Shown here: piece after piece, positions 3,114 to 49,997 of the stretch
Numbering within the stretch: position 1 is the first letter of the stretch
Layout: each line of letters starts with the position of its first letter
Assembly (NCBI GenBank): GCA_048013815.1
Contig: CM106585.1
Location: 496,001 to 560,000 of the forward strand
Direction: 5' to 3'
DNA: 64,000 nucleotides
From: Setoptus koraiensis
Taxonomy: Eukaryota; Animalia; Arthropoda
Position numbers and translations under genes: made by a program
The notes under the pieces: model-generated
Database searches by the model: none
The model's input: only the letters and a program-made list of their open reading frames with translations
What the model was told of the DNA's origin: nothing

Positions 3114-3116
3114 ATC

Positions 3117-6100
3117 ATGAACTCAGCAACATCTTCCGGTGGCGGTATCAATCAGCAGTTACCTTATTCAACAAACTACAGCTCTACAACATCTGATACC
3201 AGTTCAGCGCCATATTTCAACTCGAATAATTCTGGCCAAGGACAACAACAGCACAGTTATTTTCCTCAGTATGGATCAAGCTCTTCCGAAATCCCCAAAG
3301 CCTCATCCATGTGGCCTGATCAAACGAGCCCTCAGACCGGTCCATCTGCTTCAGGTCCTGGTTCATCTATGATGGATACAACTTCTCAATACGGTCAATC
3401 TAATCAATATGAAACGCAACCCAACGCATCTTATGGTGATTACACCTCAGCACCATTACCTACTTCATCCCATGAATACAGCCATATTTCTCAAAGTGAA
3501 ACTACACCAGCTCCACCGGCTGAAGTTGCAGACCCCTATGCAATCGACTTTCAAACATTTGAAGATTATGATGAGCAACCATCTACTCTCAAATCCAAGA
3601 AAGGTAGGCCGAAAAAGGGAGATAATAACGAGACTAAAAAAGAACGTAAGCCTCGGGCTCCACGAGCTTCCAAGGCTAATCCAGGTCCAAAAGGCAAGAA
3701 AGCTAAGGCAAGTGCTATTTCGACGGAACAATCTGTGGACCACACACTACATCCAGTTCAGTTTGAATCATCCGATGTTGTCGGCAATGAATACAATCCA
3801 CCAATGATAAATCAAGAGCATTACCCTACACCTCAGGATCCGTATAGTAACAATAATTCACACTTAAATCAGCCTGAACCACAGAACATGTATGATCAAA
3901 CTAACTTGTCGAACCTTCAGTCTACCATGAAACCAGGTGATAATCAACAATTGGGTGCACCTCATGAATACATGCCTTACAGCGACTATCCGCAACCAAA
4001 TTCGAAGCCGTCTGAGCCTCTTGAAGGTCACCAAAACCAGCAAGATGATAATCCGATTGAAAATTCCATAGAAACTAGTGATAAAATTGAAGACCAAACT
4101 TTTCAAGATTCTACTATAAATTCTCAGTTGCAAGAGAATAACAGCGGCGAAGCAGTTTCATCTAATACCAGTCACTCTGTCATTAATTCTCCAATTGCCA
4201 AAAAAGGTATTCCAAAGTGTGTTACACCATCAATCCATGAAAGCATGAACAAGCAAACTCAAGATACTAGCATTACTGTCGGAGAGGCAAATACATTAGA
4301 GGCTTTGATGAATGATTCGATTCCCATGTCTGAAAATGTAAATTTAGTGAGCGACACGACTGTTAATCATTTAAATTCAACTGACAATATCTGTGATGGG
4401 ACAAATTTAGAGCATACTCAAGAGGATAGTACAGATCAAAATATTCAGAACGAGTCAATGCAAATGCACGTGATGGAAACAAGCGGTCAGCCATCGACTT
4501 ACATCCCAAGTCAAAGTCACCAGAATGCTTACTCTTCTCAACAGAGTCATCACCACTCCGCTTCATCGTCTCCGTCAGTCTATGGTCCCAATTTACAACC
4601 TTCTATCTCAAATCAGATGATATCAAGCTCCCCATCACATAGTCCTACAAGAGCGGCATGTCCAACAAGATCGGTGGCAATGTCTGGTCCATCGCCCAAT
4701 TCTATGGTTACCCCGATGCACACCTATGGCAGCCCAGCAATGACCCACCAGAGCCTTAATGATAATGGCTTATCGCAAAATTTACCTCCCACTTCAAGCG
4801 GATATCTCATGAATTCCCCAAGTCAGTACCAATCCGTTCAAGCACAGCAACAATCGATGATGGATGCGAACCAATCTCATCCTGTAATGAATTCTAGTGA
4901 GCCTAACCCATATCAAACCATGACTAATCAATCTCACATGGCAAGTTCTACTGGTCCGCCTTTCATGAGTGAGCCAACTAGTTTTAGTGGTCAGATAGAT
5001 GGAACTCACCCGATGCTTGATGATCCTATGAGTACCTTCAATGGCGATCAGACTCTGATTCAACAGATTGATACTGCGCCAAAGAAATCTAAGAAGAGGG
5101 CGAAGAAAGAGAAAACTGGTGATTCCTCAGGTAAAAGGAAGAGTAAATCAAAAAGTAATATTCCTCCCCCGGACGTTCAGTTACCTGAAGTCAAGTCAGC
5201 CCCAGATAATTCTGAAAAAATAGATGACCCTGCCATGGAACCGAATAAAGTTGAGGCCGAAGCAGATGGATCCACTCAGCATGTTGATCCTGAGGTTAAA
5301 CCTAAGCCTAAAAGAAAAAGACCAAGTAGATCGAACGCTGAGAAGTCTAGACGCCGTAAGAAGCCCGAGACTAGTACAACTGAGACATTGCCCGTTGAGC
5401 AAGACGAACCTCTCCCTAAAATTCAGAATTCCACCACTGAGGAACCAGAGCCTTGTGCTACTGAAGAGATGGTTGATCCAGATAGTGAGAAGAAAGCTGT
5501 TAAACCTAAAAGAATTCGTGTGAGAGAATCGAGACCTTCACGAAAGAAGAAGCTTCCCAAAATAGCCCTGAAATTTTGTAAAACAAAGAAACGTAAGCGA
5601 TTGGGATCATCCGATAATGACCAGTCAGATTTAGACAAGACTCCTCCACCCTCTCCAGATGAGCTGGAGTCAGGAGTTCAGAAAAGAAGATCAGCTCGAA
5701 ACACGAAGCGACAGAAATATACTGAGAATATCGAACTAGGATTCAGTGACGACGATGATGACAGTCGACCCCTCCCATCAAAATCACGATCAAGTGCCAA
5801 GAGTGATAATCTTCCTATAAGTTCTACATCTGACACAAATTTCAATGAAACTAACGAAGGTTCGATCAACGATGAAAGTTCCGATGTTAATCACTCGAAA
5901 GAGAATAACGTAGTAGCAGCCCCTGTAGAAGATACTATGGTAGTAGAAAAAATTCTAGCTTCTAGAATGGGCACACGAGAACTAGAGCCTGAACCTGGAG
6001 AAGTTATGCTTCCAGATGCGCCAACTCATATTGAGGTAGAAGAGTTTCATGTGAAATACAAGAATCTTTCATATTTGCACTGTGATTGGAGAACCGAAGA

Positions 6101-9100
6101 GGAACTAGAGAAAGGAGACAAGAGGGTGTCTCAGAAGTTGAAAAAATTCAAACAAAGAAAGGACAGCCTTGTTTTCGACTATATGGACGATGAATCCTTC
6201 GATCCTCAGTATTGTGAAGTAGATCGAATATTAGCTGTCAATGAACATGAGGAACTTGTTCCTGAAAGTGATGATGAAGAAGCAAAGGAGTCTGAAAAGT
6301 CTGAATCAAACCAAGAAAAGCAACCCGATAGTGAAAACCCACCATTAAGTGATATAGCTAGTAATGCTGTCAAGGATGAAAAGTCTCTGCCAGAATCTGG
6401 AAATATATCTGCAGAAAATCCATCGAATGATATCGAATGTCGAAACGACCTCGTTGATTCTCCCAATACTAAGTCGAACAACGCTGATCAAGTTTCAGAC
6501 AATCTAACTGCTTCAGTTGACAATGAAGAGACCGGCGAAAAATCAACTGTCGAACCTGATACGAACGTGGAAAAAATTGACAAAGTAGAGGAGACTCACG
6601 AATCGGATCATGATACCATCACCAAAGATGTATCTGCAGCTCAATCTGAACTTCAACCACCCAAAGATCAATTTACGGAGGAATTTAAACAAGATCTCAG
6701 TGAAGAATCCCAGGAGGCTAAGGTAGAGATCAATGAAGAGACTGCGAAAGGAGTATCTGAAAACATTTCTCAAGAAACTGCTGTTACTTCGGATAAATCT
6801 AATGAAAATCAAGACGAAGGAGTAGTTGACACCATAAGCAATGAAGTCAAAGAACAAGCGCCACGACGAATGAAAAAGAAGATTGTTCGTCACTATCTGA
6901 TCAAATGGCGTGCATTAGCATATGAAGACTCTACTTGGGAGTTAGAGGACGATCTTAACCCGGCAAAAATAGCCCATTTCAATAGGTTCAAAGATCCACC
7001 ACCCAAATCAAAATGGAAACCAGTCAAGCGACCTAAGGCTGAAGACTGGAAGCGCAAAGAGGACTCGCCAGTATATAAAAACGGCAATACACTGAGAGAA
7101 TACCAATTAGAAGGTCTAAGTTGGCTTACTTTCTGTTGGTACCAAGGAAGGAACTGCATTCTTGCCGACGAAATGGGTCTCGGAAAAACAATTCAATCAA
7201 TAGCGTTTGTAAATGAAATATATCAGCATGGTATTTATGGACCGTTCTTGATCATAGTCCCCTTGTCTACCGTAGGAAATTGGGCTCGCGAGTTCGAGAC
7301 ATGGACTGATCTCAATGTAATAACTTATCACGGTAGTTCCACCAGTAGAGAAATGCTGAAAGAATATGAAATGTTCTACAGGAATGAAGCTGGCCACCGC
7401 ATAACCGCAATATACAAATTTCAAGTAATGATTACCACTTTTGAGATAATACTATCGGACTGCCTTGATCTCAGAGAAATTCCATGGCGCTGCTGTATCA
7501 TTGATGAAGCTCATAGATTGAAAAACAGAAACTGCAAATTATTAGAAGGATTGCGACTACTGAATATGGAGCATAAGGTACTCTTAACTGGTACACCATT
7601 GCAAAATAATACCGAGGAATTGTTTAGTCTACTAAACTTTTTGAATCCCGTTCAGTTTGCTTCAAATGAGCAATTCATAAAGGATTTTGGAGACCTCAAG
7701 ACAGAAGCGCAGGTAGATGAACTCAAGGCTAAGTTGAAACCTATGATGCTTCGCCGTTTGAAAGAAGATGTTGAAAAGAGTTTGGCCCCTAAGGAGGAAA
7801 CAATTGTCGAGGTAGAACTTACAAATATCCAAAAGAAATACTACAGAGCCATTTTAGAGAAAAACTTCTCTTTTCTATCCAAAGGCCAAAGCAATAGCAA
7901 TATACCAAACCTGATGAACACCATGATGGAACTCAGAAAGTGCTGTATACACCCATATCTGATTAATGGAGCTGAAGAACAGATCCTGTATGAGGCAAAG
8001 CAAAGTCGTAGTGGGGGTGAGTCCTTGAGCTCCCTCCAAGCTATGATAAACGCATCCGGTAAGCTTGTTTTAATAGACAAACTTCTACCAAGGTTGAAAT
8101 CCGATGGCCATAGGGTCCTTATATTTTCTCAGATGGTGAGATGTTTGGACATTCTTGAGGACTACGTGGTTCAGAAAAGATATCCTTACGAACGAATTGA
8201 TGGTCGTGTTAGAGGAAACTTGAGACAACAAGCTATAGATCGATACTCTAAACCAGGCTCAGATAGATTCGTCTTTCTATTGTGCACGAGAGCTGGAGGG
8301 TTAGGTATCAATTTGACAGCAGCTGATACAGTTATCATATTCGACTCCGATTGGAATCCACAAAATGATTTGCAAGCTCAGGCACGATGTCACAGAATTG
8401 GTCAATCTAAAGCCGTAAAAATTTACCGTCTAATTTGTCGTAACACTTATGAAAGAGAGATGTTTGACAAAGCGAGCTTGAAATTAGGTCTTGATAAAGC
8501 TGTACTGCAGTCAATGAATACTCAAAAAGGAGGTGTTGGTCCATCAGACGGTCAGCTATCTAAGAAAGAAATTGAGGAACTTCTACGCAAGGGGGCTTAT
8601 GGTGCCCTGATGGATGACGATAATGCAGGAGACAAGTTTTGTGAGGAAGACATTGATCAAATTCTTTCGCGACGTACTCAAGTGATCACTATTGACAACT
8701 CGGAGGCGAAAGGATCAACTTTCTCTAAAGCAACATTTTCCTCCAGTAGCAACCGAGAAGATATAGAACTAGACGATCCCAACTTCTGGGAGAAATGGGC
8801 GAAGAAAGCCAATCTCGACTCTGATGAGCTCAAGAACAAAGACGATCTTATTGTTCTAGAACCCAGAAAGAGAACTCAAACCAAGAGATTCGGAGCCGAC
8901 GATTCTCTTCTGGACATAAGTGATCTCGATTCTAGCGATGAGGATGAGGAGAATATCTCCATGCGAACCAGAGGAAGCAGAGGTAGGGTTCCAAAGACCA
9001 CCTCAGCATCGAAACGAGGCAAACGAAGAGCTTTTGATTTTGACGATGACGACTCTATGCTAGAATTCGCACCCGGAAATTGGACACGCCACGAATGCTG

Positions 9101-9499
9101 TAAGATTGAGAAGGGCTTGCTCACATATGGTTGGGATAGATGGGACGAAATCATCAAAACTGCTAATTTCAAGCGCAAAATAACAGCAAGTGATTGTGAA
9201 AATGTTGCCCGAGTTATTCTATTGTGCTGTCTCACTAACTATAAGGGAGATGAAAAGATCAAGAGTTTTATATGGGAAATGATATCGCCACAGGAGGATG
9301 CTAACAAGACTGATAATGATCTCGATTCTAGTTATTCATCAAGTCGTGGTAGAAAATCTAAATCTCACCAGTCTTCATCCAAAAGAACTATAGCTGAAGA
9401 AATTTCTTCTGCCGAATGGCCAAAAGATCCTAACTACGATCCTGCAATCTTATTGCCCGATGATCAGTATCGACGTCATTTGCAGCGACACAGCAACAA
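3117..9499 (+). CDS. kis: CHD6-9/kismet-family chromatin remodeller, exon 1 (possibly 5'-incomplete)
   Basis: Chromodomain 1 (VEKILASR...[17 protein letters not shown]) and chromodomain 2 ([10 protein letters not shown]...[17 protein letters not shown]). SNF2 motifs [32 protein letters not shown] and [11 protein letters not shown]. Subfamily motifs [11 protein letters not shown] and [13 protein letters not shown]. The frame is open from the gap edge. GTAAGT donor at 9500. Confidence 0.95.
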
Positions 9500-9723
9500 G
9501 TAAGTATTCAACTTATTCGAGAATTCTATCAAATTTGAATATGATGACCCAACCATGCTAATACCGATGAATTGAATTGTGTCCTATCAGTTCTATTCGA
9601 TGAGTTAAACCTTATCTTCTCACTTCGCTAAAATCTGATCAAGCAAAACTCTCCAAGTTGAACTTCGTTGATATACATACTAATGCATGACAATGAAAAT
9701 CCTCTCATCTTAAAATACTTTAG
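9500..9723 (+). other. 224-nt phase-2 GT-AG intron of kismet
   Basis: AA|GTAAGT donor, CTAAT branch-like motif near 9680, TTTAG|G acceptor. Splicing gives HSNK-VLLRVKLLHYLK, matching CHD7 HCNKVLLRVRMLYYL. Confidence 0.93.
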
Positions 9724-12700
9724 GGTCCTTCTGAGGGTGAAACTATTACACTATCTTAAGACTGATGTTATAGGAGACGCCCAGGATCAGATATCGGCTG
9801 GCATCTCTGCTAAGGATGTCAACATACCTTCACCATCAGTCGATGGTGGTGATTTGCCTGTCCCATGGTGGGATGATGAGGCTGACAAATCGCTTGTTAT
9901 TGGTATATATAAACATGGTTATGACAGATTCAATCTCATGCGCCAAGATCCTAGTTTATGTTTCTTCCAAAAATGTGGACCTCCGGACAATGCTGCCCTG
10001 GACGCTGAAATCAATGCGGGTGAAGACGCTGCTAAAAGTGTCGATGATGAGGAAGAGAATGAGACTCAGAACAGTCTCTCACAAAACAACAACCAGACCT
10101 CGAAGGCCGCTGAAACAGAGAACAACCAAGAGTCTTCAGTTACTATTAACTTTAAGGATAATGTTGGAAGCGACCTCAAAAAGCATGAGGACGTCACTAC
10201 AGACGACAAGGCTCGAAACAGCGATGGCTCAAACGAAAACGAATCCAAAGAAATCATAGGAAAGGTTCTCGATGATTCGAATGAGATATCTATGATTGTG
10301 GATGCGGTTTGCTCAGTAGTGACTGAACAGCAGAACAATGTCACAGATAAGGAAGTATCTGAAGATGAGAACAAGAATAGTATCATCAACGGCTGCGATG
10401 AAAAATCAATTAAAACCGAAGAGCCTGCTCAGGATGAACCAATGAACGTCGATACTATCGAGGATACGAAATTGCAACTCCCTGACGACTCCAACAAATC
10501 CGAAAAGAACCATCCGCCCACTCACGGCGATACACCTCAAAATAACGAGCGCGATGTCAAGATCAGTCAGAATGGTGGCAGCCTGTTATCCGAAGACGAT
10601 CGCTCGAAGGCCACAACAAATCCATTTTTACCTTTCCCATCTCAATCAGATCTCAACCAGAGATTCAGACGAATAATTACATCATACCAACGTAACTCAA
10701 AGAGACAAGAAATCAAGATGGCACAAAAAGTCCGCGATGAGTTAAAGAAAGAGAGGACCAGTAAATTCGAGGCTGCACGTAACGAGCGTGAGGAAAGAAA
10801 AAGGTCCCAAGCTCAGAAATGGTCTAGAAGAGAGGAAGGTGACTTTTATAGAACGATCGCATCATTCGGTGTCGATTACAAGCGCGACGAAAAGCGTTAC
10901 GATTGGAACAAATTTAGATCTCTTGGTAAGCTTGAAAAGAAAATGGACGAAACTATGGATGAATATTACAAAGCTTTCGTTACCATGTGCAAGAAGGTCA
11001 CTTCAAAACCTTTGACCGATGAAGAGGAGAAGTGTCAAATTAATGTTGATCCGATAACAGAGGAAAGAGCGAGTCGCTGTCTCTCACGAATCGAGTTCCT
11101 CAGTAATTTACGTGAGGAAATTGTCACTCACCCAGAACTAGATGAACGACTCAAGTTGTGTCAAACAGCTGTAGATCTTCCGGATTGGTGGATTTGTAGT
11201 AAACATGACAAGGAACTTCTACTATCAGCAGCGAAACACGGCTTGGCAAGATTGGACTTTAACCTGGCTCACGACAAAGAATTTTCCTTCATCGAAGTGA
11301 TAAATAACAAGGCCGAACAACTGTTTAAACAACCACCCAGCCCAGTGCTTATATCTGTATCTCAACTACAAGAATTACTGGAATTGAACGGTATCGAATA
11401 TGTCAAAGATCCGGATCTGACAAGCGACTCAGATGAAGTTCGAGCATTTTTAGACAGTATAATAGACTCCATTGTCGAAGCAGAGAAGTCTTCTAGTGAC
11501 TCTAGTGCTGAGAATCCCGAGGACTCCGATCAGATCAAGAATGAAGCCGAGAAAGAGCAGGGGCCAACTTCAGATTCCATGAACGAGGAAATTAATGAAA
11601 AGAACGTGGACACGACGAACATGGCTGGCGATGGAGATACTGAGCGAGATCCAATATTCAATAAGACTCTCGCTGATTTGATTGATGGACCATCCAATCA
11701 AACTTCATCGAACGAGAATGACCCAACTCCTGAGTCTAAACTCGATGAAATGAACTCGCTACCTATAATATCTATGTCCTCATCTGCAATCAAAACATCA
11801 CCAAAAGGGCAAAAGTTAACCATAGCGTTCACAAATCATCCGAATCCGTATGGAAAATCATCGACTCCCAACATCATTACCAGGAGAAGCTCAAATCTTA
11901 TACGGCCTCTCGAAACAATTGATGGCAATCCATTGTCGGTCAGGCTTGCCTCATTCGGACGCAAAGGTAAAGCCAACGAAGTGAAGATGGCAGAGATCAT
12001 ACCAGTTCTTCCAGAGGAATTTACTGAAGATTATAGACGCTCATTCGAGGCTGGTGAGATCACTATAAGCATACCAACTAACGAAGCCACAATCAACACC
12101 GCCAGTAATGTACCAATTACTCTTCAAGGTGCTAAGTTTATGGTAACATCCAAGTTGAGATGGCCAAAAGATAAATCATTACAACTGAGATTGGAGCATA
12201 TTGTACATGCAGTTGAAAAGAATGAATGGCCTTCATCACGTCAACCATACGTCCACGTCGTACCTACAATCACACTACCGAATCCCACAGCACCTCTTGT
12301 AACAGTCACCACTACCAACTCGACTGCACCCACTACAATAGCCACCCCACTAACATCTGTTGCGGGAATACTCGGACAAACTCCACCAAATCTTCACTCC
12401 AAGAGTATACTGAGTGATAAACCATCTGAGGCGTTGCCCGAAACTCACCCTGCACCTGCTGCGTCTCCAACTCCTTCTGATAGCAGTAGCAAGCGACCCT
12501 CTTCACCTAACCCGGATACACCTAAAAGTAGCGAGGGTCCAACTCGAGGTGCAAAGCGCGGCCGTGGACGTCGACCTAAGAACCCTCCTCCGGCTACAGA
12601 TCCTTCTTTTGTCCAACCTAAATCGGATGCTGATCGTGCACGTCTTAGAAATCTTCTATCCCAGGGACTTAGTTCCAAACAATCAACATCTACTAATCAA

Positions 12701-15514
12701 TCCAAAGCCAGCGAGAAGAATCAAAGCGGTAGTGCGAAACAAAGTGGATCACAATCCAATAGTGGCCTATCCTCCTTGTTAGCCAATCTCAAACAAAAGA
12801 TGTCAAGCTCAGGTTTATCAAAATCTGATAAAGCTTCATTAGATCAATCTACATCGCTGCTAGGTAAAAACTCTAACTCCTTGATCCCACAACTCCTTCA
12901 GATGCAACTAGCCAATATGAAACCTGAAATTCGAGATGCTATAATGGGTAATCCAGATAGAGCAGCGATGCTCCTGAATTCGCTTGCTAACTTACCCTCC
13001 ACAAATGTCGTTGGTCATCAAAGATCCGGTTCAACATCGACCACAGATAGTGTAACTAACAGTAAAGCATCCACCTCATCTCGAGGTCCACCGCCTGCTC
13101 ACCAGCGAGGAGCCCCGCCTGCTGCTCATGGTGACGGTCCATCTACCCGAGAATCGAGACGCAACTCACAGGATGCAAACTCTTCTTCAAGCCTAAGATC
13201 TACCAGAGGCAAAACATTAACTGCCTCCAACGACCAATTCAGTCAATCAGCAGCCATTTCTAAACCATCTTCCTCTGCCAAGATGACGAGTCGAAAACGT
13301 GGCAGGCCCAGTTCTAGCAACACAGAAAGCCAACCTACGGGTACGGACATACTAGATCTAAGCTCATTGCCCACCAAATCACAAGGTAAACAAGCTGATA
13401 ATTCTCGGGTGAGATCTCCCTCGCGAGTTTCAAGAAGATCAAGAGACTCGTCGGGCCCTGAAGAACCTGAGTTACCACCAGCGATTCCTATAAAAGCAAG
13501 TATGAAATCTCCTCACAAGCAACAATCCAAAACAAGTGAGCTAACTGAGGACAATACTGGTAGGTCAACAAGGGCGAGCAAGCGAATAGGAAGTCGCATC
13601 GATGCACTAGCCCTCAACTTGCAAGCTAAAAAGATGAGAATGGAAGGTGACTCCACTCCTAGTGGTTCTGGTGAACCATCTCCATCACTACCAACAGATA
13701 AGAGTAGTTCGCATTTTGGCTCGAATACCAGCTCATCTAGACGAGCCAGTAATTCAACTCATGCTCCGCCGACAAGTCAGTCACCAAATCCTTCTCAAGC
13801 TCCGGCAGCACACGGTGGATCCAAGTCTTCACTTTCATCTATGAATCAGGTGAAGGCACCTCCGGCGGCACACTCTTCGTCGAACTTGCAACCTAAGTAC
13901 AATAATGAATCGTTGCTCATTAAAAGTGGATCCGTTCAAGAACAAATTGGAAAATATGGCAAATCATCGTCATCCAAGTCATCTTCTTCCAGCAGGGCAT
14001 CATCTTCTAGCTCGTTCGCGGATCAGCAGAGGTTAGCAGCTGACATTATGAACCTGCCAGACATTAAAAAGCTACTCCGAGACAATCCAACTTTAAGCAA
14101 CTGGCCTTTGGCCATGAATTCACCATTCAATATACCAACCAGTGGTGCTCCGTCAATATCTGCAATGCCTCAGAATACTGAGGTACTTGAGTTACCTGAC
14201 GGAAAGAAGAGAAGCAAACGATCTGGCGAACAACAGAGTGATCACAATTCATCTCACCTCTCACGAAATGACCAGCCTAAACCAACACCATCGATTCCTC
14301 CTCTTCCTAATCTTGGGCCTGGTGTCGAAGATTTCTACAATCAATTCCTGATGAAACTCGGACAAGGCAATGCAGCCAGCACACCAAAGAATATATCAGA
14401 GTGGTTGAAAAATCCTAATCAGCTTGCGAGTTTGCTGAGTCTGGGCACACAGCAGTTACCCTTACCACCTTTCAATCAAATGTCCAGTCCATCTCTAGCT
14501 TCTTCACCGTCGCCATCTAAACATCAACAGATGGATTTCAAGACTCCAAACGAAGTGTCTGGATCGAGTCACTCTAAGCGCCTCCGCCAATCTAGCGGGT
14601 CGTCATCATCACAAGATCGTTCGCAACCTTCTTCTCACGATCGAAGAAGCTCGTCCGGCCAGGAGAAACGTTCGTCATCCTCACAAGAACGATCGAAATC
14701 ATCCACCAGCAATCCTCCTAATCAAGAACGATTCGAGCGGCAAGATAGATCACACGATCGACGTTCTTCGTCGAACACAGGCTTCTCAGGCAACAGCAAC
14801 ATGCATGAACGTGATAGCAGCTCCTCAAGACGATCATCAACATCATTGCTCGCTCAACAACAAACCCAAAATCTACCCTCTCCGCAGCAGCTACAACAAC
14901 AAGTTGGCTCAAATGCAGCCTCAAGCGGACTATCCGCTGCCACTCTAAATCTTGCCAACCAATTCCCTGGACTAAACATGAGCAGTTTGCTCAGCAATCA
15001 AAATGTGATGACCAAGGTTTTAATGGAACAGATGGCTGCCATGGCCGGCTTACCGATGCTACAACCACCAGTTCCCTCAAATGTCACCGGTGGTTCTTCA
15101 TCTGGATCCTCAGAGAAAAGCAACAAATCTAGATCTAGCTCCCAGAATCCCAACTCTAGCTCACTTGCACCACCACCAGCTTTTCCCAATCCACTGCTAC
15201 CTCCGTCATCTGGTAGCGCATCGAACAACCCCTACTTGAATCTTAATCCTAATCCATTCTTGTTCGGATTAGGCAATTTTGGAATGGGACTACCAAATCA
15301 TATGAACTTGTTCCATGGCTTGAATTTGCCTGGTCTGGGACCGATGCCAGGTCTTGATCCACAACAAGTGCCATCTGCCCAACATCAGCAGAATCAACAA
15401 CCACAGCAGCAACAACAACAATCAAATTCTTCGAGCTCCTCAGGTAAATCGAGGGATAGGCAAGACGGGTCATCACGATCGAGTGGCTCAAGTGGAAGAA
15501 GCTCGCGTAGATAG
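9724..15514 (+). CDS. kis: kismet/CHD7-like exon 2 (SANT/SLIDE-like C-terminal region plus long S/Q/P low-complexity tail)
   Basis: [54 protein letters not shown] and RWPKD...LEHIVHAVEKNEWP are all CHD7/8/kismet motifs. Joined CDS is 12,174 nt (4,057 aa plus stop). Confidence 0.93.
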
Positions 15515-16137: not shown

Positions 16138-16423
16138 TCATCTATATACTGTCCGTGCGGATTTCTGTACACACACATCCTAAAGAATCTCATGGTGCAT
16201 CTCTTCAAAGAACACTCACCTGTATTGGTTTGTTGATCACTGCAGTGTTTGCCACGCACACTATTTGCGTAAAAAGCTTAATCTTGTGGCCATACCTGGT
16301 TGACCATAAGCGTTTTTTTTTTTATCAATTTGTAATCTAATAAGTAGTTAGATTACGTATTTATCTCCTGACGAATTACTTTTCGACAACATTTGCATGT
16401 GGATCTTTATTATCTGTGGACAT
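16138..16423 (-). CDS. Candidate 4-exon micro-gene (55 aa) with very short introns, divergent from POMT1
   Basis: Exons 16423-16380, 16336-16296, 16260-16220 and 16179-16138. Donors GTAATT, GTATGG and GTGAGT with TAG acceptors keep the frame open: MSTDNKDPHANVVEKLQIDKKKNAYGQPVCVANTAVINKPIQDVCVQKSARTVYR. No homologue recognised. Confidence 0.3.
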
Positions 16424-16550
16424 CCCTACTATGAAAAATAAATATTATGAAAGAGGCCCATCGACATTTAAAGACTTAGAATCATCTTTTATCTTTTGAT
16501 AGCCTTTAATATATTTAAATAGCTTTTAACATTGCTAGATACACCTCAAT

Positions 16551-18674
16551 ATGCTGTATATCAAGATTGATGCCATCCTTGTACTGATTACATTGATATC
16601 GGTCATAACTCGTTCCTACAGGTTGGATTATCCCAAATCAGTTGTATTCGATGAATTGCACTACATCAAATTTGCATCGCTTTATATGAAGCGGATCTTC
16701 TTTTTTAATTTTCAGCCGCCTCTGGGAACGCAACTAATATCATTCATTGCCTACCTATTTAATTTCTCTGGAGATTTAATTTACAATCAAATAGGAGACA
16801 CCTACAGTGACGATGTACCAATAGTAGCTCTGCGACTACTGCCCTGTATCTGTGGCTCTTTAGTAGCGCCTCTAATCTATTCCATAGCAATAGAACTCAA
16901 TTTAAGACAAACTACGGCACTATTTGCTGCAATAGCTGTGATATTAGAGAACTCATTACTTACTCAATCAAGATTTATACTCATGGATTCCATAATGATC
17001 TGTTTCATGCAACTGGGTTTGCTTAGTTTTCTCAAATTCAACAAAACAGAACCGTTAACATTCAAATGGGTTCTACTATTAAACGGAACAACTTTTTTTG
17101 CAACACTAAGCTCATTAGTCAAATACTCAGGATTGTACTCATTCTTTTTCGTCATTATACTACTCTCATTATCTATGTGGAACAACATAGGATATGCCAA
17201 ATATAGTAGCAGACAATTATGGAAACATTCATTACATTATATATTAGCCATTATATTATTTCCTATATTTATTTACTTTGCCTTGTACTATTCTCATCTG
17301 AGATGGCTCAATCAGGCTGGACCGCACGACAACATCATGACTAGTGCCTTTCAGGCTAGTCTCGAAAACGGTTTGGCCTCAATAACTAAGGGTCAACCAT
17401 TAGAGATAGTGCACGGATCACAAATCACTGTACGCAATACCCACGGGCGCGGTTGTTGGCTACATTCGCACGATCATTTGTATCCAATAAAGTATAACGA
17501 TGGCAGAGGGAGCTCCCATCAGCAACAGGTAACTTGTTACTCGTTTAAGGATGTCAACAATTGGTGGATAGTCAAGAGGCCACATGTAGAGGATTTAGTT
17601 GTTAGTGAACCGAGAGACAAAATTAAAAACGGCGACATTATACAGCTAGTGCACGGCCTCACCGGAAGACTGCTCAACTCACATGATGTGGCGTCGGCCA
17701 TGAGTCCCCATAGTCAGGAGGTGTCGTGTTATGTTGATCACAACATTTCTATGGCCGCTCAAGACAATTGGCGTATTGAATTGTTTAATTGGCAAGAGAC
17801 CAACAACCAGTGGCACACTATTAATTCTAGATTCAAGCTAATCCATTTGAACTCTAGCTTGGCGCTTAGGTTCAGCGGACGACAATTGCCGGATTGGGGC
17901 TTTCATCAGCATGAGGTCACCACGGATAGGGATTTGAAACACGAGGACGCAATTTGGAATGTTGAGGAGCACAGATTTACGAAGAGTAGCGATCAAAAAG
18001 AACGCGAATTCGATCTTGGACAGGCCGATTTTATACCATTGGAGCCTACACATTTGTCGTTCTGGGACAAATTCTTGGAGATACATTACAAAATGGTGAC
18101 TCATCAACAGGACGGAGTGAAGGATCATTTGTATGCCTGCGAGAACCCATTAGATTGGATCTTCCTCAACAAAGGCACAGCTTATTGGGTAGATCCGACA
18201 GGAACGAGCAATCGTCAGATATTCTTTTTAGGAAATGTCTATTTATGGCACATTGGAAATATTTCGTTAGCTGTAATGTGTTTTATTTGCATAACGTACA
18301 TTCTGAGAAGGCGCAGGCTCATCTTTGATTTAGATGATGACGACTGGCAAAAGTTTTGCATAATAGGAACTGTTACGATAGTAGGATATCTAGTTCATTT
18401 GATGCCTTACTTTCTATATGAGAGCACTCTATTTCTGCACAACTATTTACCAGCGCTCACGTTTAAGATACTTGTTACGGCCGCCCTTATTGATAATCTC
18501 TATAAATTCTTTCCGGGTTATGTTGTAATTGGCATAATGGTATCACTGGTATCGGTGTTGGTCAGTTGCTTTCTAAAATTTCTACCCATCACTTATGGTA
18601 TAACTGATTTAAGTAGCAATGGGCTAGTTGAGTTGAAATGGAAACCGACATGGCAGCTTATAACGATTGTATAA
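16551..18674 (+). CDS. POMT1: Protein O-mannosyltransferase 1 (rotated abdomen), intronless, 707 aa
   Basis: VVFDELHY loop with the catalytic DE pair, multiple TM helices, MIR domains with the POMT1-type GRGSSHQQQVTCYSFKDVNNWW, C-terminal LFLHNYLPAL and LKWKPTW. Confidence 0.93.
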   Translation: MLYIKIDAILVLITLISVITRSYRLDYPKSVVFDELHYIKFASLYMKRIFFFNFQPPLGTQLISFIAYLFNFSGDLIYNQIGDTYSDDVPIVALRLLPCICGSLVAPLIYSIAIELNLRQTTALFAAIAVILENSLLTQSRFILMDSIMICFMQLGLLSFLKFNKTEPLTFKWVLLLNGTTFFATLSSLVKYSGLYSFFFVIILLSLSMWNNIGYAKYSSRQLWKHSLHYILAIILFPIFIYFALYYSHLRWLNQAGPHDNIMTSAFQASLENGLASITKGQPLEIVHGSQITVRNTHGRGCWLHSHDHLYPIKYNDGRGSSHQQQVTCYSFKDVNNWWIVKRPHVEDLVVSEPRDKIKNGDIIQLVHGLTGRLLNSHDVASAMSPHSQEVSCYVDHNISMAAQDNWRIELFNWQETNNQWHTINSRFKLIHLNSSLALRFSGRQLPDWGFHQHEVTTDRDLKHEDAIWNVEEHRFTKSSDQKEREFDLGQADFIPLEPTHLSFWDKFLEIHYKMVTHQQDGVKDHLYACENPLDWIFLNKGTAYWVDPTGTSNRQIFFLGNVYLWHIGNISLAVMCFICITYILRRRRLIFDLDDDDWQKFCIIGTVTIVGYLVHLMPYFLYESTLFLHNYLPALTFKILVTAALIDNLYKFFPGYVVIGIMVSLVSVLVSCFLKFLPITYGITDLSSNGLVELKWKPTWQLITIV

Positions 18675-18728
18675 TAATAGTAGGAATATTGATTGTGTCG
18701 AGTTGATTGTCGACCCAATCTGAGCAGT

Positions 18729-18734
18729 AATAAA
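18729..18734 (+). terminator. Probable POMT1 polyadenylation signal
   Basis: AATAAA 55 nt after the POMT1 stop and 17 nt before the stop of the convergent gene. Confidence 0.55.
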
Positions 18735-18750
18735 GGAATCAAAAAAAGGA

Positions 18751-19896
18751 TTAGAGTGTCTTCATTTTTTTCGTTTTTTTCGACTTCGAGCTACCGCTAC
18801 TTTGAGAGTTTCTAGCTGAATCAGGGCTGTGGCAACTCTCATCGTCGGACATGGAAATGGGCAGTGAAGGTCTGTCATCAATGAAATGGATCTCCTTTAT
18901 GTGAATATCTACTGTGATCCTAGTGGAGAATTGCCTATTACAAAATTCACAATACAATCCCATTAGTTCATCCTCTTGAACAGGCAATGAAGCACTAAGC
19001 TCACCATGAGTTTCTGGTTTGATAGCGCTGCGTATTAGTTCGGCTCTAGTTTCATCAACACAAATCATGTTAAAAACACACGGTGCTCTGCTGTCCAATA
19101 AAAACAGCACCCTCTCATAAGCTGCCAGTATGTAGAAGGCACACATATCCGATCGTGTTTGTTGGGACATCTTGATAGGTTTGATGGAAAATTTTGGATA
19201 TAAATTCTTAAGACGTTGATACAATGGATGAGTAGATGGGTTGACACCTAACAGTACATTTAGAGCATCGGCAATCATGATACGTTTTGTCATCGTCAGA
19301 TAATTGACTAAGAAAATAACTATGTACCAGTGGTTCTCGTAGGCAATAGCCGCGATATTGATACCATCCCTGAGGGGTCTAGGTTCCTCTTTTTCTGGTA
19401 GATTTGGCTCAAATTCTATTATATTTACATTCTTGAGTTTGTTGGCATGCCTATATTGGCGCATATAATCATACATTTCCCCTTGTTTCAGCCATAGCCT
19501 TGTATTGGAGCCTGTGTGATTCCAGAGCTTACTTAATTTTGGATTTTCGAAAGCCGCGATAAGATTGACACAGTCACAGTTTTGCGCCGGCACCCACGAG
19601 GGAGGTCCTGTCCATCCTTTCCAGCGACAAAGATAGTAAACTTGTTTTCTGATCACTTGTTTGTCTAGAATCTTCTCCACCTCCCATTCGTCCTCCTTAG
19701 TTGGTGTGCTCTTGTGTATTTTTCTCTTCTCAAATTCTTTGATCAAATCGGGGCAATTACAATCTTTTGCCGGTTCCCATGTTAATTCTGAGTAGCCTTT
19801 CCATTTGATCTTGTAGTAGACAACATTTTGGAAGACTTTCTGGTCTACCACTTCCTCCACTTCATAGGTTGATTCGTCTTCAGTGTCGGATGACAT
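18751..19896 (-). CDS. Tandem chromodomain + Ulp1/SENP-like (clan CE) cysteine protease + C2H2 zinc finger protein, 381 aa
   Basis: Chromodomain 1 at aa ~10-58 (YEVEEVV..KIKWKGYSELTWEP) and chromodomain 2 at aa ~70-118 (WEVEKIL..RWKGW..SWVP). Protease motifs WLKQGEMYDYM, H189-W190, D210 and QQ-x5-C252. C316-x2-C319-x12-H332-x4-H337. Confidence 0.88.
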   Translation of the reverse strand: MSSDTEDESTYEVEEVVDQKVFQNVVYYKIKWKGYSELTWEPAKDCNCPDLIKEFEKRKIHKSTPTKEDEWEVEKILDKQVIRKQVYYLCRWKGWTGPPSWVPAQNCDCVNLIAAFENPKLSKLWNHTGSNTRLWLKQGEMYDYMRQYRHANKLKNVNIIEFEPNLPEKEEPRPLRDGINIAAIAYENHWYIVIFLVNYLTMTKRIMIADALNVLLGVNPSTHPLYQRLKNLYPKFSIKPIKMSQQTRSDMCAFYILAAYERVLFLLDSRAPCVFNMICVDETRAELIRSAIKPETHGELSASLPVQEDELMGLYCEFCNRQFSTRITVDIHIKEIHFIDDRPSLPISMSDDESCHSPDSARNSQSSGSSKSKKTKKMKTL

Positions 19897-20828
19897 GGTT
19901 CAATGAGATAATAGAAGACAATGATTGGAGTGGGCGATGATACAGGTAATCGGTCAGTGAACATGTGAGAAATTGCTACATAAGTCTGATTGCGTGTGAA
20001 TATACAATCGCTAGCTGAAAATATTTTGTGAGAGGGGGGCGAGACTGCGCACAAATTTTGAATCTCTCGACGGAACTCGCATGTTTAGCTGAATATCTGG
20101 CCGTGTTAATGCAGGGAAAAGAAGGGCCAAGATCGATAGCGACGATATTACGCTATCGGTAGCAACAAAAAAGCACGCGTTAGCAGCGACCCGCCCAATA
20201 CGCGCCAGTTTATGGGCACCCATTGTAGCTAGAGTCGTGCCGGGTCGCATGTGGACTCGGGCTTCATTCCTGGGCCATTCACTGGTCGCACTAACAAGCG
20301 CGCTCGCTAGGGTAGCCTATTTTTTCTCTGCTGTGAATTGATGAAGCACGTTAGGCCACATTGCGCGCTTGTGTGACATTTTGCCGTGCTGGTGCATCTT
20401 GTACGGCGGATTTGAGCGGACTCGTCTATGGCCAGCGCTATTCCTGTGAATAGAATCAGCAGTTGGTTGTTTTATGGCTGGCCGATTGTGATGCAGCATG
20501 TAGCATCATGTAAAATTAGCAACCAACACCGTCAACTACTGTGTCGCTATGCATACGGCCAAGAGCCCAATTAGAAAATCAAGCTATTATTAGGTAATAA
20601 GCCACGGGCACGATAAATGGACATGACGTCATGTAACAGTCATCTGGGCACCAAGAGCAGGCTTATGGAAGCTTCGCGTGGGCGATCTGTTAAAATCTAT
20701 CCGTTGAATCAATAGCCGCAGTGTAGATTATCTGGATAACGTCTGGATATTGTTGATTGTGGATGACGCCACTATTTGGCATTTCCACAGTCGAGTGACA
20801 AACAAATCATGTATTATTGATGATGTCA

Positions 20829-20949
20829 TTAGTAGTAAGACATGCGGTGCACCCAACCGCCTGGGTATTGTCTGATGAAGTATTTGCGCGTCTCGTCGTA
20901 CGCCAGCGTCAATATTGAAAAGGGAATTCCCGTTAGCCACCAGAGGATG
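20829..20949 (-). CDS. Atpalpha: Na+/K+-ATPase alpha, terminal exon (absent from the ORF track)
   Basis: After a CACAG acceptor it reads ILWWLTGIPFSILTLAYDETRKYFIRQYPGGWVHRMSYY*, matching the family C-terminus WW..FP..L..YDE.RK...R..PGGWV..ETYY. Confidence 0.93.
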
Positions 20950-21139
20950 CTGTGAGCAGGTTTTTCAGGCGAAAGATGAGTTAGCAAGAATCGGTTTATA
21001 TCAGTTGTGTAGTGTACAATCGAAATTACTCCCAGCGATGCTGATCGGCCAATCGGCCACTCACGAAACTCACAAAACTCGCAAACTCGTCAGCTAAACT
21101 CGATTGCCAATCTAACATGTCAGTGCACTAAAAGCTCAC
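20950..21139 (-). other. 190-nt phase-2 GT-AG intron of the ATPase
   Basis: AG|GTGAGC donor, CTAAC branch motif, CTCACAG acceptor. Splicing restores YPIS-ILWW. Confidence 0.92.
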
Positions 21140-24100
21140 CTGATGGGGTACAGATTGATGGCGCTGGTGCCTGGCACGTAGCATAGTGCCGCCGTCACCA
21201 CCGTCTCAAAGAACAAACCGAAATTGAGCACGTGATTTCCCATGCCCTGTTCTCTGATGGACAATTTTCGCGTCTTGCTCACTATGAGATCGGCCCATTG
21301 AACTACCACTATGGTCACAAAGAAGGCCGTCTGGCAGGTATGCTCGAGAAACTTTCTGTCCTTGTATGACCAGCTCTGATTGTACGAGTCCACTAGTGTT
21401 GTTACGTTCTCATTGTCCCATTCCTTTCTGATGCCCTTCAAATCTTTCAGCATCCAACCGCATTCGGCCATCACCACAAAATAGGTGAAAAAACCCGCAA
21501 AGGCCTGTAAAACGCCCAACTGACCATAGGCCAGCGATATGAGGCGCCAATTAACCAGACCGCCGTCGTTGGTGGCATTTCGTGGCTTCCTTCGCATTAT
21601 GTCCCGTTCGGCCTTTTCGTATGCCAGCGAAATGGCTGGCACCATATCGGTCACCAAGTCTATCAGCAATATGCACACTGTGCTAAGCGCAAGCGGAAAA
21701 CCAAATATAACATAAACAAGAAACGGGGCCAATTCGGGCACGTTCGAAGTCAGCGTGTACGCTATGGACTTTTTTAAATTGTCAAAAATGATTCTGCCCT
21801 CCTCTATGCCCGTAACAATAGAGGCAAAATTGTCGTCCAACAGAATCATGTCCGCCGCTTGCTTGCTGACGTCACTGCCATTGACGCCCATGGCAATGCC
21901 AATGTCGGCCTTCTTGAGGGCAGGCGAATCGTTGACACCGTCCCCTGTCACCGCAACCACTGCGCCCGTCCGCTGGCACCCCTCAACAATCATCAATTTT
22001 TGCTGGGGCGACGTCCTAGCGAACACAATCTCATCATGTTGACGCAGTATGTCGTCTAGGCGCTCTTCGCTCATGTAGCGCAACTCTTGACCGTGCACCA
22101 CAATAGCCTTGGCCAGTTTCGGGTCCACCGCCTTGACGGGTATGCCTAGCCGTTTGGCCACATCGTCGGGCGTTTCGCTGTGCTCGGATATAATGCCCAC
22201 CGAGCGGGCAATCGCTTGCGCCGTTATGGGATGATCGCCTGTCACCATGATGACACGAATGCCCGCGTCGCGGCACTTTGCCACCGCGTCGGGCACCGCC
22301 GCCCGGGGCGGATCAATCATGCTGACGAGGCCCAAAAAGCGCATTCCGCGCTGCGGGAAATTCATCGTGTCCAAATCGAACTTATAGTTTTCGGGATACT
22401 CGGCACTGGGCAGGGGCAAGTCGCAAAAGCCTATTACCCGTTCGCCCAGACCGCCCATGTCCTCGTAGGCGCGGATAAAATTTTCGCGCATCTTACTGTC
22501 GAGCGGTTTCAGTTCGTTCGAGCACAATATCTTGTCGCAGCGCTCCAAAATTCTCTCTGGGGCCCCTTTCATCACCACAACATAACGGCAATCGCTTTCG
22601 TATTTCTGATACAGCAATTTGACACTGTTAGACGATTGCAAGGCACTCAGCGATTCGCTGCGCGACACGGGCGCCCCCTCAAGCGACTGTGATTGTTTGT
22701 TGGCTTGTTTCCGCTGGTCGCCCGTCTTGCTCGCTTTGGGCGAGCTGGGGCCCTTGTGGGCCCTCTGTTGTTGTTGTCTCATGAGTTTCTTCTTTTTGGC
22801 CCGTTGCGCGGCCGCTCTAGAGCGGCTCACCGACAGGTCGCTGTCGTCGCCCAGGCCGCCTGTTGCGTCCGCGCTGACATCGTGCACCGACAGGGCGTAC
22901 TTATTGGTGGAATTGAACGGCAACTCAACAATCTTTTTGTGCTTTTGTCTATACTCGTTGACGTTGCCAAATTCGCCCTCTAGCCACTTGAGAATGGCCG
23001 ATTCGCTTGCGTCACCCGTAGTGGCCCGCTTCCTAATGGGCACCCGCTCTTGGTTAGGCCTAAACTGGGCCCGGCTACACAAGCGGCCCGCTCGGGTCAG
23101 AGCCTGCCAGGCCAGCGAGCGTGTGTCGCGCAACCTCTGACGGCGCCTATCGTGCACCTCAAACTTGAACATGTGGTTGTCGTACCAACCGTGACTGACA
23201 GTCATGGTGTTCTTGGTCAGTGTGCCCGTCTTGTCCGAGCAAATGATCGATGTTGAGCCTAGCGTCTCAACGGCCTCGAGATTTTTCACAAGACAGTTGC
23301 GGGCAGCCATCCGCTGCGCTGTCAGTGTCAGGCACAAGGTTACGGTGGCCAGCAGACCCTCGGGCACATTGGCCACTATGACGCCAATGAGGAACACTAC
23401 CGCCTCTAGCCAGGGATAGTCGTTTAGTTTGGCCAATATGAAAAAGAAGAAGCCCAATCCGCAAGCAACAAGTGTTATCAACTTTATAAAATGATGTATC
23501 TCTTTCGCGATGGGCGTCTCGCCCGACGACAATTGCGCCGTCAAGCCAGCAATGTGACCCATCACTGTGTTGTCGCCTGTTGCTATTACAATGCCCTGGC
23601 CGGAGCCCTCGACACAATTGGTGGAATAAAAGGCCAAATTGCGCGTCTCCAATGGATTGTCATGAGTCTTGTTTACGGTTCTCATTTGGGGCTCCGATTC
23701 GCCAGTCAACGATGAATTGTCCACACGCAACGAGTCCACCTTGAACAGGCGTATGTCGGCGGGAATTCTGTCGCCGCCGTTCACTTCGACAATGTCGCCC
23801 ACAACTAACATATCGGCATCGATTGTGTCCTTGGTCCCGTTTCTCACAACGTTGGCATGACTGGGCACCAGGCGCTTGAATGAGTCTATTATGTTGGCGC
23901 TTTTGCTCTCTTGATAATAGGCAAACAAGCCCGTGCACAGCACCACTAAAGCCAGCACAATGCCCAACAGAAAATTGTCCCATCGACCGTCCAGCGAGTA
24001 GGCGCCAATACACAACAGGGCGCCCACCCATAGCAATATCGAGAAACCCGAAAATAGCTGACGGGAAAATTTTTTCCATTCACTTTCAGGTCGCGGCGGC

Positions 24101-49849: not shown

Positions 49850-49997
49850 ACAACAACAGCACCAGCAACAACAGCAGCAACGGCAGCAACAGCAGCAACA
49901 GCAGCAACAACAACAGCAACAACAGCAGCAACAACAGCAGCAACGGCAGCAACAGCAGCAACAGCAGCAACAACAACAGCAACAACAGCAACAACAA
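49850..49997. repeat. CAA/CAG (opa-like) repeat with a 63-bp higher-order duplication
   Basis: CGG variants at 49881 and 49944 are 63 nt apart with matching context. Confidence 0.92.

Follow-up and report, generated by a model that had tools for sequence, protein, structure and literature searches.

Can a single polypeptide both recognise methylated chromatin and strip ubiquitin-like modifiers from it? The question is raised by an open reading frame in a stretch of 64,000 nucleotides of the genome of Setoptus koraiensis (GCA_048013815.1, contig CM106585.1, positions 496,001 to 560,000 of the forward strand; hereafter the window, in whose numbering coordinates are given). The original prediction, made from the letters of the DNA, was that it encodes two chromodomains, a Ulp1/SENP-like protease domain and a zinc finger in one chain.

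The gene

18751..19896, minus strand: complete, intronless coding sequence of 381 amino acids, stop codon at 18751-18753 (from the list of open reading frames)

The 381-residue open reading frame has an in-frame stop two codons 5' of its ATG and is colinear with full-length homologues, and contigs of run X4 span 18028-19951 without joints. One sequencing run, of unspecified kind, gives coverage limited to the gene and its 3' neighbour, and the RNA runs X9 and X12, with zero reads anywhere on 5 kb, are uninformative on expression. The protein consists, in this order, of two chromodomains, a middle domain of about 170 amino acids and one C2H2 finger, and the residues singled out beforehand (W135, H189-W190, D210, Q245-Q246, C252 and C316-x2-C319-x12-H332-x4-H337) are all found at the positions given for them. 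The gene is probably a lineage-restricted host gene of eriophyoid mites.

Two chromodomains, one of them conserved

19717..19869, minus strand: chromodomain 1, HP1-like, residues 10-60 (best Pfam Chromo stretch 11-58; HP1alpha alignment)
19534..19689, minus strand: chromodomain 2, residues 70-121, with the cage W71/W92/W95 (CBX3 and CBX7 alignments)
19534-19548, minus strand: invariant ENPKL motif at the end of chromodomain 2 (37-sequence alignment)

Two stretches of the protein match Pfam Chromo (PF00385; 71.5 bits, cutoff 25.1; E 5.4e-20), and in phmmer alignments against the PDB residues 2-58 align to HP1alpha/CBX5 and residues 69-119 to CBX3, the CBX7 alignment covering 69-119 too, in agreement with the prediction of two tandem chromodomains of the HP1 type. 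In the same PDB alignment Y11/W32/Y35 take the positions of the HP1alpha cage, Y20/W41/F44. Both aromatic cages are indeed complete in this protein, as had been claimed, but across the family the first is degenerate and only the second invariant. Chromodomain 1 has zero invariant columns and a mean entropy of 2.0 in the 37-sequence alignment, with Y11 present in 16/37 sequences, W32 in 26/37 and an aromatic residue (Y, W or F) at position 35 in 13/37. Chromodomain 2 is better conserved than any other part, with 11 of its 52 columns invariant and an entropy of 1.04; W92 and W95 are invariant, and W71 occurs in all 36 sequences that cover its position. Judged from this alignment, chromodomain 1 is not a conserved reader, its cage, complete here, being degenerate in a large part of the family.

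The sole named relative, A0A6G1SE94 from Aceria tosichella, is labelled "HP1". Both chromodomains resemble those of HP1/CBX proteins, with 40-50% identity to the HP1alpha/beta/gamma chromodomains and an aromatic cage. However, unlike HP1/CBX, the protein carries its chromodomains in tandem and has no chromoshadow domain, and its C-terminal two thirds consist of a protease fold and a zinc finger; the label of HP1 orthologue was therefore rejected. The Pfam Chromo_shadow match (E 0.032; 14.7 bits, below the cutoff of 22.4) comprises residues 23-47, inside chromodomain 1.

The fold of the middle domain

18997..19509, minus strand: domain with the cysteine-protease fold of clan CE (Ulp1/SENP/NEDP1/OtDUB-like), residues 130-300 (AF2 model, VIA, Foldseek, Atlas)

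The AlphaFold (AF2) model of the middle domain (pLDDT 86.7, pTM 0.83) was compared by VIA with PDB representatives at a cut of Z of at least 8; 29 chains were found at Z 8.3-14.6, all of them of clan CE, and the next-best match lies at 5.6. They include the SUMO protease NopD (14.6), OtDUB (13.9), RickCE (13.8), NEDP1 (13.3), XopD (13.2), Ulp1 (12.2, at 17% identity) and SENP7 (11.6). A Foldseek search with the same model places CE-clan enzymes alone at the top (PDB top 50, Swiss-Prot top 30), and the best structural match in the ESM Atlas is an arthropod 'SENP6-like' C48 cluster (155 residues at TM 0.67 and rmsd 2.9 A); the protein-language-model neighbours there belong to C48, C5, C57 and ElaD clusters. 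All three comparisons lead to clan CE, which bears out the prediction of a Ulp1/SENP-like fold, and as modelled the middle domain is a clan CE fold. The fold leaves the choice of substrate open, since among the VIA matches are deubiquitinases and deNEDDylases, but also proteases of viral polyproteins and acetyltransferases of the YopJ type.

The domain shares its fold with the MEROPS C48 enzymes Ulp1 (1EUV), SENP7, SENP8/NEDP1 and NopD (VIA Z 11.6-14.6), but unlike these it has no detectable sequence-profile membership. Peptidase_C48 (PF02902) gives no match for the whole protein at E <= 1 nor for the isolated domain at E <= 10; for the isolated domains of 22 relatives the best Pfam values are E 0.13 for C48 (2/22) and E 0.21 for ElaD/SseL, and a family profile run against the PDB sequences returns zero chains at E <= 10. 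When the profile of alignment A2 was run by hmmsearch against 183 proteins, 36 members scored above 219 bits and all others below 3 bits, with no CE-only relative among them. A search with this profile for stand-alone or otherwise fused relatives of the CE domain gave family members alone, and a region-restricted CE-domain search gave, among 210 candidates scored, one match, again a family member; the exhaustive phmmer search covers the best 150 of 2194 matches, and weak CE-only relatives could lie beyond those.

The YopJ-type matches suggest one alternative, namely an acetyltransferase of CE fold, of the YopJ/ChlaDUB type, that at methylated nucleosomes would acetylate chromatin proteins on Ser/Thr/Lys. 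PopP2, HopZ1a, AvrA and Lem17 of the YopJ family are found by Foldseek at E 4e-5 and by VIA at Z 8.3-9.9, and this family uses the same His-Asp/Glu-Cys set. However, its Z scores are the lowest of the CE matches (8-10 vs 12-15 for isopeptidases), a domain of about 170 residues leaves no space for the regulatory/IP6-binding subdomain of YopJ (the matched chains are 266-405 residues long), Pfam Acetyltransf_14 (PF03421) matches neither this protein nor its relatives, and an invariant tryptophan pair, described below, points to a Gly-Gly tunnel. An acetyltransferase is therefore very unlikely.

Candidate catalytic residues

19492..19494, minus strand: W135, candidate first tryptophan of the Gly-Gly tunnel (invariant, 37/37)
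19327..19332, minus strand: H189-W190, candidate catalytic histidine and second tunnel tryptophan (invariant, 37/37; start of strand 189-199 in the models)
19267..19269, minus strand: D210, candidate triad aspartate (invariant, 37/37; directly after strand 202-209 in the model)
19141..19143, minus strand: C252, candidate nucleophile, in the invariant R248-S249-D250-x-C252 (37/37; N-terminus of the central helix 249-266 in the models)

Across the 37 sequences, which are 32-53% identical to this protein, only 36 of the 381 columns are invariant. Since W92/W95, W135, H189, W190, D210 and C252 are all among them, as is every zinc ligand, the pattern of conservation is more than chance; Y191 and R248-S249-D250 are invariant in 37/37 as well. 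The triad and the two tryptophans that had been matched to Ulp1 are thus kept throughout the family. According to DSSP of the model, the His-Asp-Cys order and the placement of these residues in the secondary structure are canonical for clan CE, C252 lying in the first helix turn. In the VIA alignments the first model residue is 18 (residue 134 of the protein), opposite Ulp1 447 and NEDP1 25. The tunnel tryptophan of both enzymes lies one residue after this start, which fits W135 as the counterpart of Ulp1 W448; in Ulp1 the pair W448/W515 clamps the Gly-Gly tail. From the topology of the model and the alignment ranges I infer that H189, D210 and C252 cluster in three dimensions and that the tryptophans line a tunnel.

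The domain resembles C48 in the His...Asp...Cys order, the HW dipeptide, a tryptophan about 55 residues upstream of the histidine and the cysteine at a helix N-terminus. It differs from C48 in being a minimal domain of about 170 residues, in sharing its chain with chromodomains and a C2H2 finger, and in its glutamine, which is found at Cys-7 and is not universal; the aspartate of the R-S-D-x-C loop stands one position farther from the cysteine than is usual in C48. In Ulp1/SENP the oxyanion-hole glutamine occupies Cys-6. The Ulp1-like spacing claimed at the outset holds for this protein, in which Q246 stands six residues before C252, but it does not extend to the family, as Q246 is unique to this protein and the position is Met in 36/37. 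The family glutamine is instead Q245, at Cys-7 (Q in 27/37, P in 9/37, L in 1/37), which I take to be the spacing of adenain rather than that of Ulp1.

This imperfect retention of the oxyanion glutamine, with proline in a part of the family, would suit a catalytically dead scaffold, in which the CE domain serves only as a SUMO/ubiquitin-binding module and the protein reads both methyl-lysine and a ubiquitin-like modifier. A pseudoenzyme, however, has as a rule lost the nucleophile if nothing else, and here His, Asp and Cys, together with the R-S-D-x-C loop, are invariant over 37 deeply diverged sequences, and dN in the CE domain is low. I consider a dead scaffold distinctly unlikely.

The adenain-like spacing could also indicate a chromatin-tethered CE-clan endopeptidase whose substrate is not a ubiquitin-like modifier, and which would clip histone tails or process a partner as adenain, poxvirus I7L or ASFV pS273R do; its domain might come from a virus or from a Polinton/Ginger-type element. 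Structurally, viral processing proteases match well (VIA Z 12.3 for monkeypox I7L, 11.7 for ASFV pS273R and 10.4 for adenain), viral clusters make up most of the top protein-language-model neighbours, BFVD yields an unnamed viral protein (E 8e-7) as well as an Ulp-like protein of an entomopoxvirus (E 1.3e-4), and Ulp1 domains are known to be carried along by Ginger and Mutator transposons (PMC2836005). However, the top VIA Z scores belong to SUMO, NEDD8 and ubiquitin isopeptidases, the nearest Atlas structure is the arthropod SENP6-like cluster, viral or transposon genes are absent nearby, and the invariant tryptophan pair is a putative signature of Gly-Gly tail recognition. An endopeptidase of this kind is accordingly unlikely, and an isopeptidase for a ubiquitin-like modifier remains the reading that I prefer.

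Zinc finger and tail

18883..18960, minus strand: single C2H2 zinc finger, residues 313-338 with ligands C316, C319, H332 and H337 (invariant, 37/37)
18754..18882, minus strand: Ser-rich, basic, disordered C-terminal tail, residues 339-381 (pLDDT < 50)

The predicted C-x2-C-x12-H-x4-H finger has all four ligands invariant, and in the model it takes a beta-beta-alpha form, with two short strands and a helix at 326-337 (pLDDT 82-91); Pfam zf-C2H2_jaz matches it at E 0.0013 with 19.3 bits, under the cutoff of 22.6. The basic tail that was described as ending the protein is present here, but it is not a conserved feature of the family: it contains no invariant column and is missing in most homologues.

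Selection and genomic context

For the closest pair, dN/dS comes to roughly 0.07 overall and roughly 0.06 within the CE domain, with dS near or at saturation, and dN is lowest in chromodomain 2 (0.057 vs a saturated dS). The coding-sequence comparison shows that purifying selection acts on the gene; as dS is saturated or nearly so even in the closest pairs, this statement is limited to dN being far below dS, which is also the outcome of the dN/dS check that had been proposed.

In the window the gene is flanked by POMT and a P-type ATPase, with a CHD helicase and a hexokinase adjoining, and four homologous loci likewise have ordinary neighbouring genes. Synteny with the window, in the form of the POMT and ATPase neighbours, is absent from all homologous loci examined; a downstream RING gene is common to both members of the closest pair. 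The differing neighbourhoods between species, and the fact that chromodomains and Ulp1 domains are each known from mobile elements (PMC2836005), would suit an open reading frame of an active or recently active element, encoding a transposon accessory protein that targets heterochromatin. Against this, inverted or direct repeats flanking the gene do not exceed chance and there are no TIRs, neither transposase, integrase nor RT occurs near the gene in the window or in the four homologous loci, each homologue is found on 1-4 contigs only, the closest species pair keeps synteny, and purifying selection is strong. The repeat search and the annotation of neighbours agree with the earlier statement that the gene has neither a transposase nor terminal repeats at its flanks, and the proposed check against a transposon ORF finds ordinary host genes. 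An ORF of an active or recently active element, for which TIRs, transposase and, as far as one window shows, copies are all lacking, was rejected and is hardly credible; for domestication from a mobile element, as suggested at the outset, these data speak neither for nor against.

A probable reader and protease in one chain

The explanation that I favour, and hold to be reasonably probable, is that the protein is a single-chain 'reader-eraser': an isopeptidase for a ubiquitin-like modifier, active and most likely a deSUMOylase, that is held at methylated chromatin, with activity and substrate both predicted. Against it count the missing C48 profile match, the family glutamine away from the Ulp1 spacing, the breadth of functions within the fold and the weak expression evidence. 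Chromodomain 2, with its invariant W71/W92/W95 cage, would bind a methyl-lysine mark, most likely H3K9me2/3, and the intact chromodomain 1 of Setoptus koraiensis may supply a second binding site. HP1 dimerises through its chromoshadow domain and thereby gains bivalency, for which the tandem chromodomains might substitute. Binding to methyl-lysine would concentrate the CE-clan cysteine isopeptidase on marked chromatin, where C252, activated by H189 and D210, would cleave the modifier from chromatin proteins while its Gly-Gly tail threads between W135 and W190; the modifier would most likely be SUMO, with NEDD8 or ubiquitin possible. The C2H2 finger may contribute a contact to nucleic acid or protein. 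In this scheme the catalytic activity, the substrate (be it SUMO, NEDD8, ubiquitin or other) and the histone mark are all predicted. A precedent for such reader-protease logic is SENP7, which resides at pericentric heterochromatin and binds HP1 (PMC4960310).

For the SENP7-HP1 module of mammalian pericentric heterochromatin, PMC4960310 cites Maison 2012 and Romeo 2015, and an Arabidopsis silencing module of the SUMO protease FUG1 with AL3 and LHP1 appears in the reference list of PMC12903978. As far as these citations go, in both a chromodomain protein brings a SUMO protease to H3K9me or H3K27me chromatin, which is the likeness to the present protein; they differ from it in that their components are separate polypeptides acting in trans, whereas here reader and protease are in one chain, and this makes it a possible 'Rosetta-stone' fusion. 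OtDUB, RickCE, SseL/ElaD, XopD, CidB, adenain, I7L, pS273R and the YopJ family have the same fold and catalytic set, but these CE-clan enzymes of bacteria and viruses act as secreted effectors or virion proteases, and the accessory domains that they carry are of other kinds, none of them a chromodomain. In Ginger1 and Mutator/KI-MULE elements, Ulp1-type protease domains are fused to chromatin/DNA modules, e.g. PHD or integrase (PMC2836005). The present protein resembles them in that combination; however, their domains are recognisable as pfam02902, fused to transposase and bounded by TIRs, whereas here there is neither transposase nor TIRs and, judged from one window, a single copy stands among host genes.

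The chromo-chromo-CE-finger architecture is found in no Atlas cluster in a whole-model search and in no AFDB cluster match, in a whole-protein fold search dominated by chromodomain proteins, and a literature search for it gave nothing relevant, all of which is in line with the prediction that the fusion is not a described architecture. Of the computational tests proposed for refuting that prediction as a whole, none went against it. Tentatively, it may be the first case in which a methyl-lysine reader and a protease for ubiquitin-like modifiers share a single chain. It would then be a heterochromatin deSUMOylase (or deubiquitinase/deNEDDylase) that targets itself and fixes in cis the HP1-SENP7 partnership known in trans from mammals; it would have evolved in eriophyoid mites, whose genomes are miniaturised and, reportedly, holocentric and TE-poor, and its CE domain would be so divergent as to constitute a new peptidase family. 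SUMO turnover on heterochromatin is known to need proteases that chromodomain proteins recruit in trans, as in SENP7-HP1, and a natural fusion would be independent 'Rosetta-stone' evidence that reader-directed removal of modifiers is a selectable unit of chromatin regulation. Clan CE would gain a sequence-orphan family that current profile libraries miss and whose sole named member is annotated as something else, and an intronless protein of 381 residues could serve as a compact tool or model enzyme for reader-directed modifier removal. In Aculops lycopersici a Chromo-domain orthogroup has been reported to be expanded (PMC7738191), and the fusion may be one more sign of a remodelled chromatin machinery in eriophyoid mites.

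Results and discussion

The protein under study is encoded by one uninterrupted entry in the ORF list:

18751-19896, minus strand, uninterrupted open reading frame of 381 amino acids

The same frame has a stop codon two codons ahead of the ATG. The tandem chromodomains of the original prediction are borne out by two Pfam Chromo stretches (71.5 bits against a cutoff of 25.1, E 5.4e-20), and by phmmer alignments to PDB sequences of residues 2-58 with HP1alpha/CBX5 (E 1e-12) and of residues 69-119 with CBX3 (E 3e-9). The HP1alpha cage columns correspond to Y11, W32 and Y35 of the first chromodomain, CD1. All residues named beforehand stand at the positions claimed, and the spacing given for the zinc finger, C316-x2-C319-x12-H332-x4-H337, is correct; zinc-finger Pfam models scored only below threshold on the 381-residue protein.

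The middle of the protein, residues 125-312, matched no Pfam model. When 22 isolated domains were compared with Pfam, the top matches were Peptidase_C48 (E 0.13, two members) and ElaD/SseL (E 0.21, one member), and the family profile found zero matches among PDB sequences. AlphaFold models the domain with pLDDT above 90 across most of residues 140-300 in the full-length protein, and with pLDDT 86.7 and pTM 0.83 in isolation. The domain model was scanned against 48,161 PDB representatives with a structure comparison (VIA, given as Z scores) that is independent of Foldseek; all 29 chains with Z of at least 8 belong to clan CE, and the next score is 5.6. The highest scores are those of NopD (14.6), OtDUB (13.9), RickCE (13.8), NEDP1 (13.3) and XopD (13.2), followed by SseL (12.6), I7L (12.3), Ulp1 (12.2), SENP5 (11.9), CidB (11.8), pS273R (11.7), SENP7 (11.6) and adenain (10.4). 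Foldseek matches in PDB and Swiss-Prot are likewise clan CE, an arthropod 'SENP6-like' C48 cluster comes closest among ESM-Atlas structures (TM 0.67, rmsd 2.9 A over 155 residues), and by language-model features the neighbours of the domain are C48, C5, C57 and ElaD clusters, all of which agree with the proposed clan CE fold. As viral CE proteases and viral clusters also match the domain well, an endopeptidase acting on targets other than ubiquitin-like proteins, of viral or transposable-element ancestry, was considered, but I regard it as unlikely. A YopJ-like acetyltransferase is very unlikely, as the YopJ group has the lowest scores (8.3-9.9) and the domain is without the regulatory subdomain.

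The model has H189 as the opening residue of a strand, D210 just after the following strand, and C252 in the central helix, within its first turn. This arrangement is canonical for clan CE; the candidate triad would thus be spaced for catalysis. The VIA alignments start with residue 134 opposite Ulp1 447 and NEDP1 25, so that W135 fits as the candidate first tunnel Trp. In an alignment of 37 sequences, just 36 of the 381 columns are invariant. Among them are H189-W190-Y191, D210, R248-S249-D250-x-C252 and W135, so that both the triad and the two Trp of the original prediction are conserved throughout, as are all four zinc ligands. An inactive modifier-binding scaffold is quite unlikely, given the invariant triad. 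Q246 is indeed Gln here, but it is not a family feature, as 36 of the 37 sequences have Met; the Gln of the family is found at position 245, seven residues ahead of the Cys, where nine members have Pro. Similarly, the 'complete cage' of CD1 holds for the present protein but not for the family (Y11 in 16 and W32 in 26 of 37), and CD1 has zero invariant columns. The second chromodomain, CD2, is the best-conserved part of the protein (mean column entropy 1.04); W92 and W95 of its cage are invariant, and W71 occurs in all 36 sequences spanning that column. ENPKL, linking CD2 to the protease domain (residues 117-121, window 19534-19548, minus strand), does not vary in any of the 37 homologues. Conservation reaches 90% or more at F127 and N131; residues 126-129 have pLDDT below 50.

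An index of 5.8 billion proteins yielded about 30 full-length homologues (35-53% identity, 84-97% coverage). An exhaustive phmmer search of 1.84 billion cluster representatives gave nine full-length clusters among the best 150 of 2194 matches, the rest of these 150 aligning over the chromodomain region alone. In a local search of 183 retrieved proteins with the middle-domain profile, 36 members scored above 219 bits and the remainder below 3. The chromodomain-CE protease family is lineage-restricted. Its sole named homologue belongs to the wheat curl mite Aceria tosichella and bears the label 'Heterochromatin protein 1' in UniRef; for the present protein, orthology to HP1 was rejected because Pfam finds no chromoshadow domain. 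Run SRR3100151 carries two members 75% identical, P0009 and P0008 (L009:1001-2029, L010:1001-2071), which are either paralogues in one genome or from two mite species sampled together. Many of the retrieved proteins P0042-P0064, among the best 150 of 2194 phmmer matches, have 4-8 separate chromodomain stretches, and P0044 has eight in 926 residues; this suggests lineage-specific expansion and shuffling of chromodomains.

The protein combines two HP1-type chromodomains, a clan CE fold, an invariant His-Asp-Cys set with a Trp pair and an invariant C2H2 finger, which supports the original prediction in fold, catalytic-residue conservation and architecture. Probably, CD2, together with CD1 in the present species, would dock onto methyl-lysine chromatin and concentrate there an active isopeptidase, which would strip SUMO, possibly NEDD8 or ubiquitin, off chromatin proteins; activity, substrate and histone mark are predicted. 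The predicted mode of action resembles that of the Ulp1/SENP/NEDP1 enzymes, but the protein falls outside profile PF02902, and its CE domain is therefore classed by clan, as a divergent new family. The nearest functional precedent is SENP7, which partners HP1 at pericentric heterochromatin, though in trans (PMC4960310). No paper or structure cluster with this architecture was found within the libraries searched.

Ulp1 domains of transposons are fused to transposases (PMC2836005), unlike the present protein. Inverted or direct repeats flanking the gene do not exceed chance, in line with the absence of terminal repeats in the original prediction, and its neighbours are ordinary host-type genes; a mobile-element ORF is hardly credible. 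The gene lies tail-to-tail with a protein O-mannosyltransferase (POMT) gene, with 76 nt between stop codons; a Na/K-type P-ATPase lies upstream, and a CHD6-9-type helicase and hexokinase are close by. Four homologues have different but equally ordinary neighbours (Mre11, kinase, DEAD helicase, RRM, SAP130, Evr1/Alr, RING), the closest pair, P0001 and P0004, sharing the downstream RING gene. The gene is under purifying selection. Between P0001 and P0004 dN is 0.12 and dS 1.8, with dN/dS about 0.06 in the CE domain, rough values as dS is at or near saturation; dN is lowest in CD2.

Two RNA runs gave zero reads over the entire 5 kb examined, and so say nothing about expression of the gene. Sequencing run X4, the kind of which is not on record, gave three contigs colinear with the genome at 18028-19951 and nowhere else in 16400-21400. 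They reach from 55 nt upstream of the ATG to 720 nt past the stop, where the convergently oriented POMT gene has its 3' end. The pattern looks, if weakly, like transcript-limited, unspliced coverage, and suggests that the 3' ends of the two transcripts overlap or abut.

The left 26 kb of the window is dense in long intronless genes; the 38 kb of 26435-64000 hold one ORF of at least 150 residues (49531-50031). The packing with intronless genes fits published eriophyoid mite genomes, which are 32-Mb with more than 80% of genes intronless, few very small, purportedly holocentric chromosomes and an expanded Chromo-domain orthogroup (PMC7738191). Two neighbouring frames look like one CHD6-9/kismet-type chromodomain helicase:

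3117-9503, plus strand, ORF of 2128 amino acids, candidate CHD6-9/kismet-type part
9668-15514, plus strand, ORF of 1948 amino acids, candidate CHD6-9/kismet-type part

Across both lie SNF2, Helicase_C, two Chromo and HTH_CHD6-9 domains, and the gap of about 165 nt may represent either one intron or an interruption of the reading frame. Window 1-4000 shows low GC (0.29-0.32) and extreme strand asymmetry (GC skew -0.74 and -0.43, AT skew +0.25), with a single small tandem repeat seen at 802-869 (period 28).
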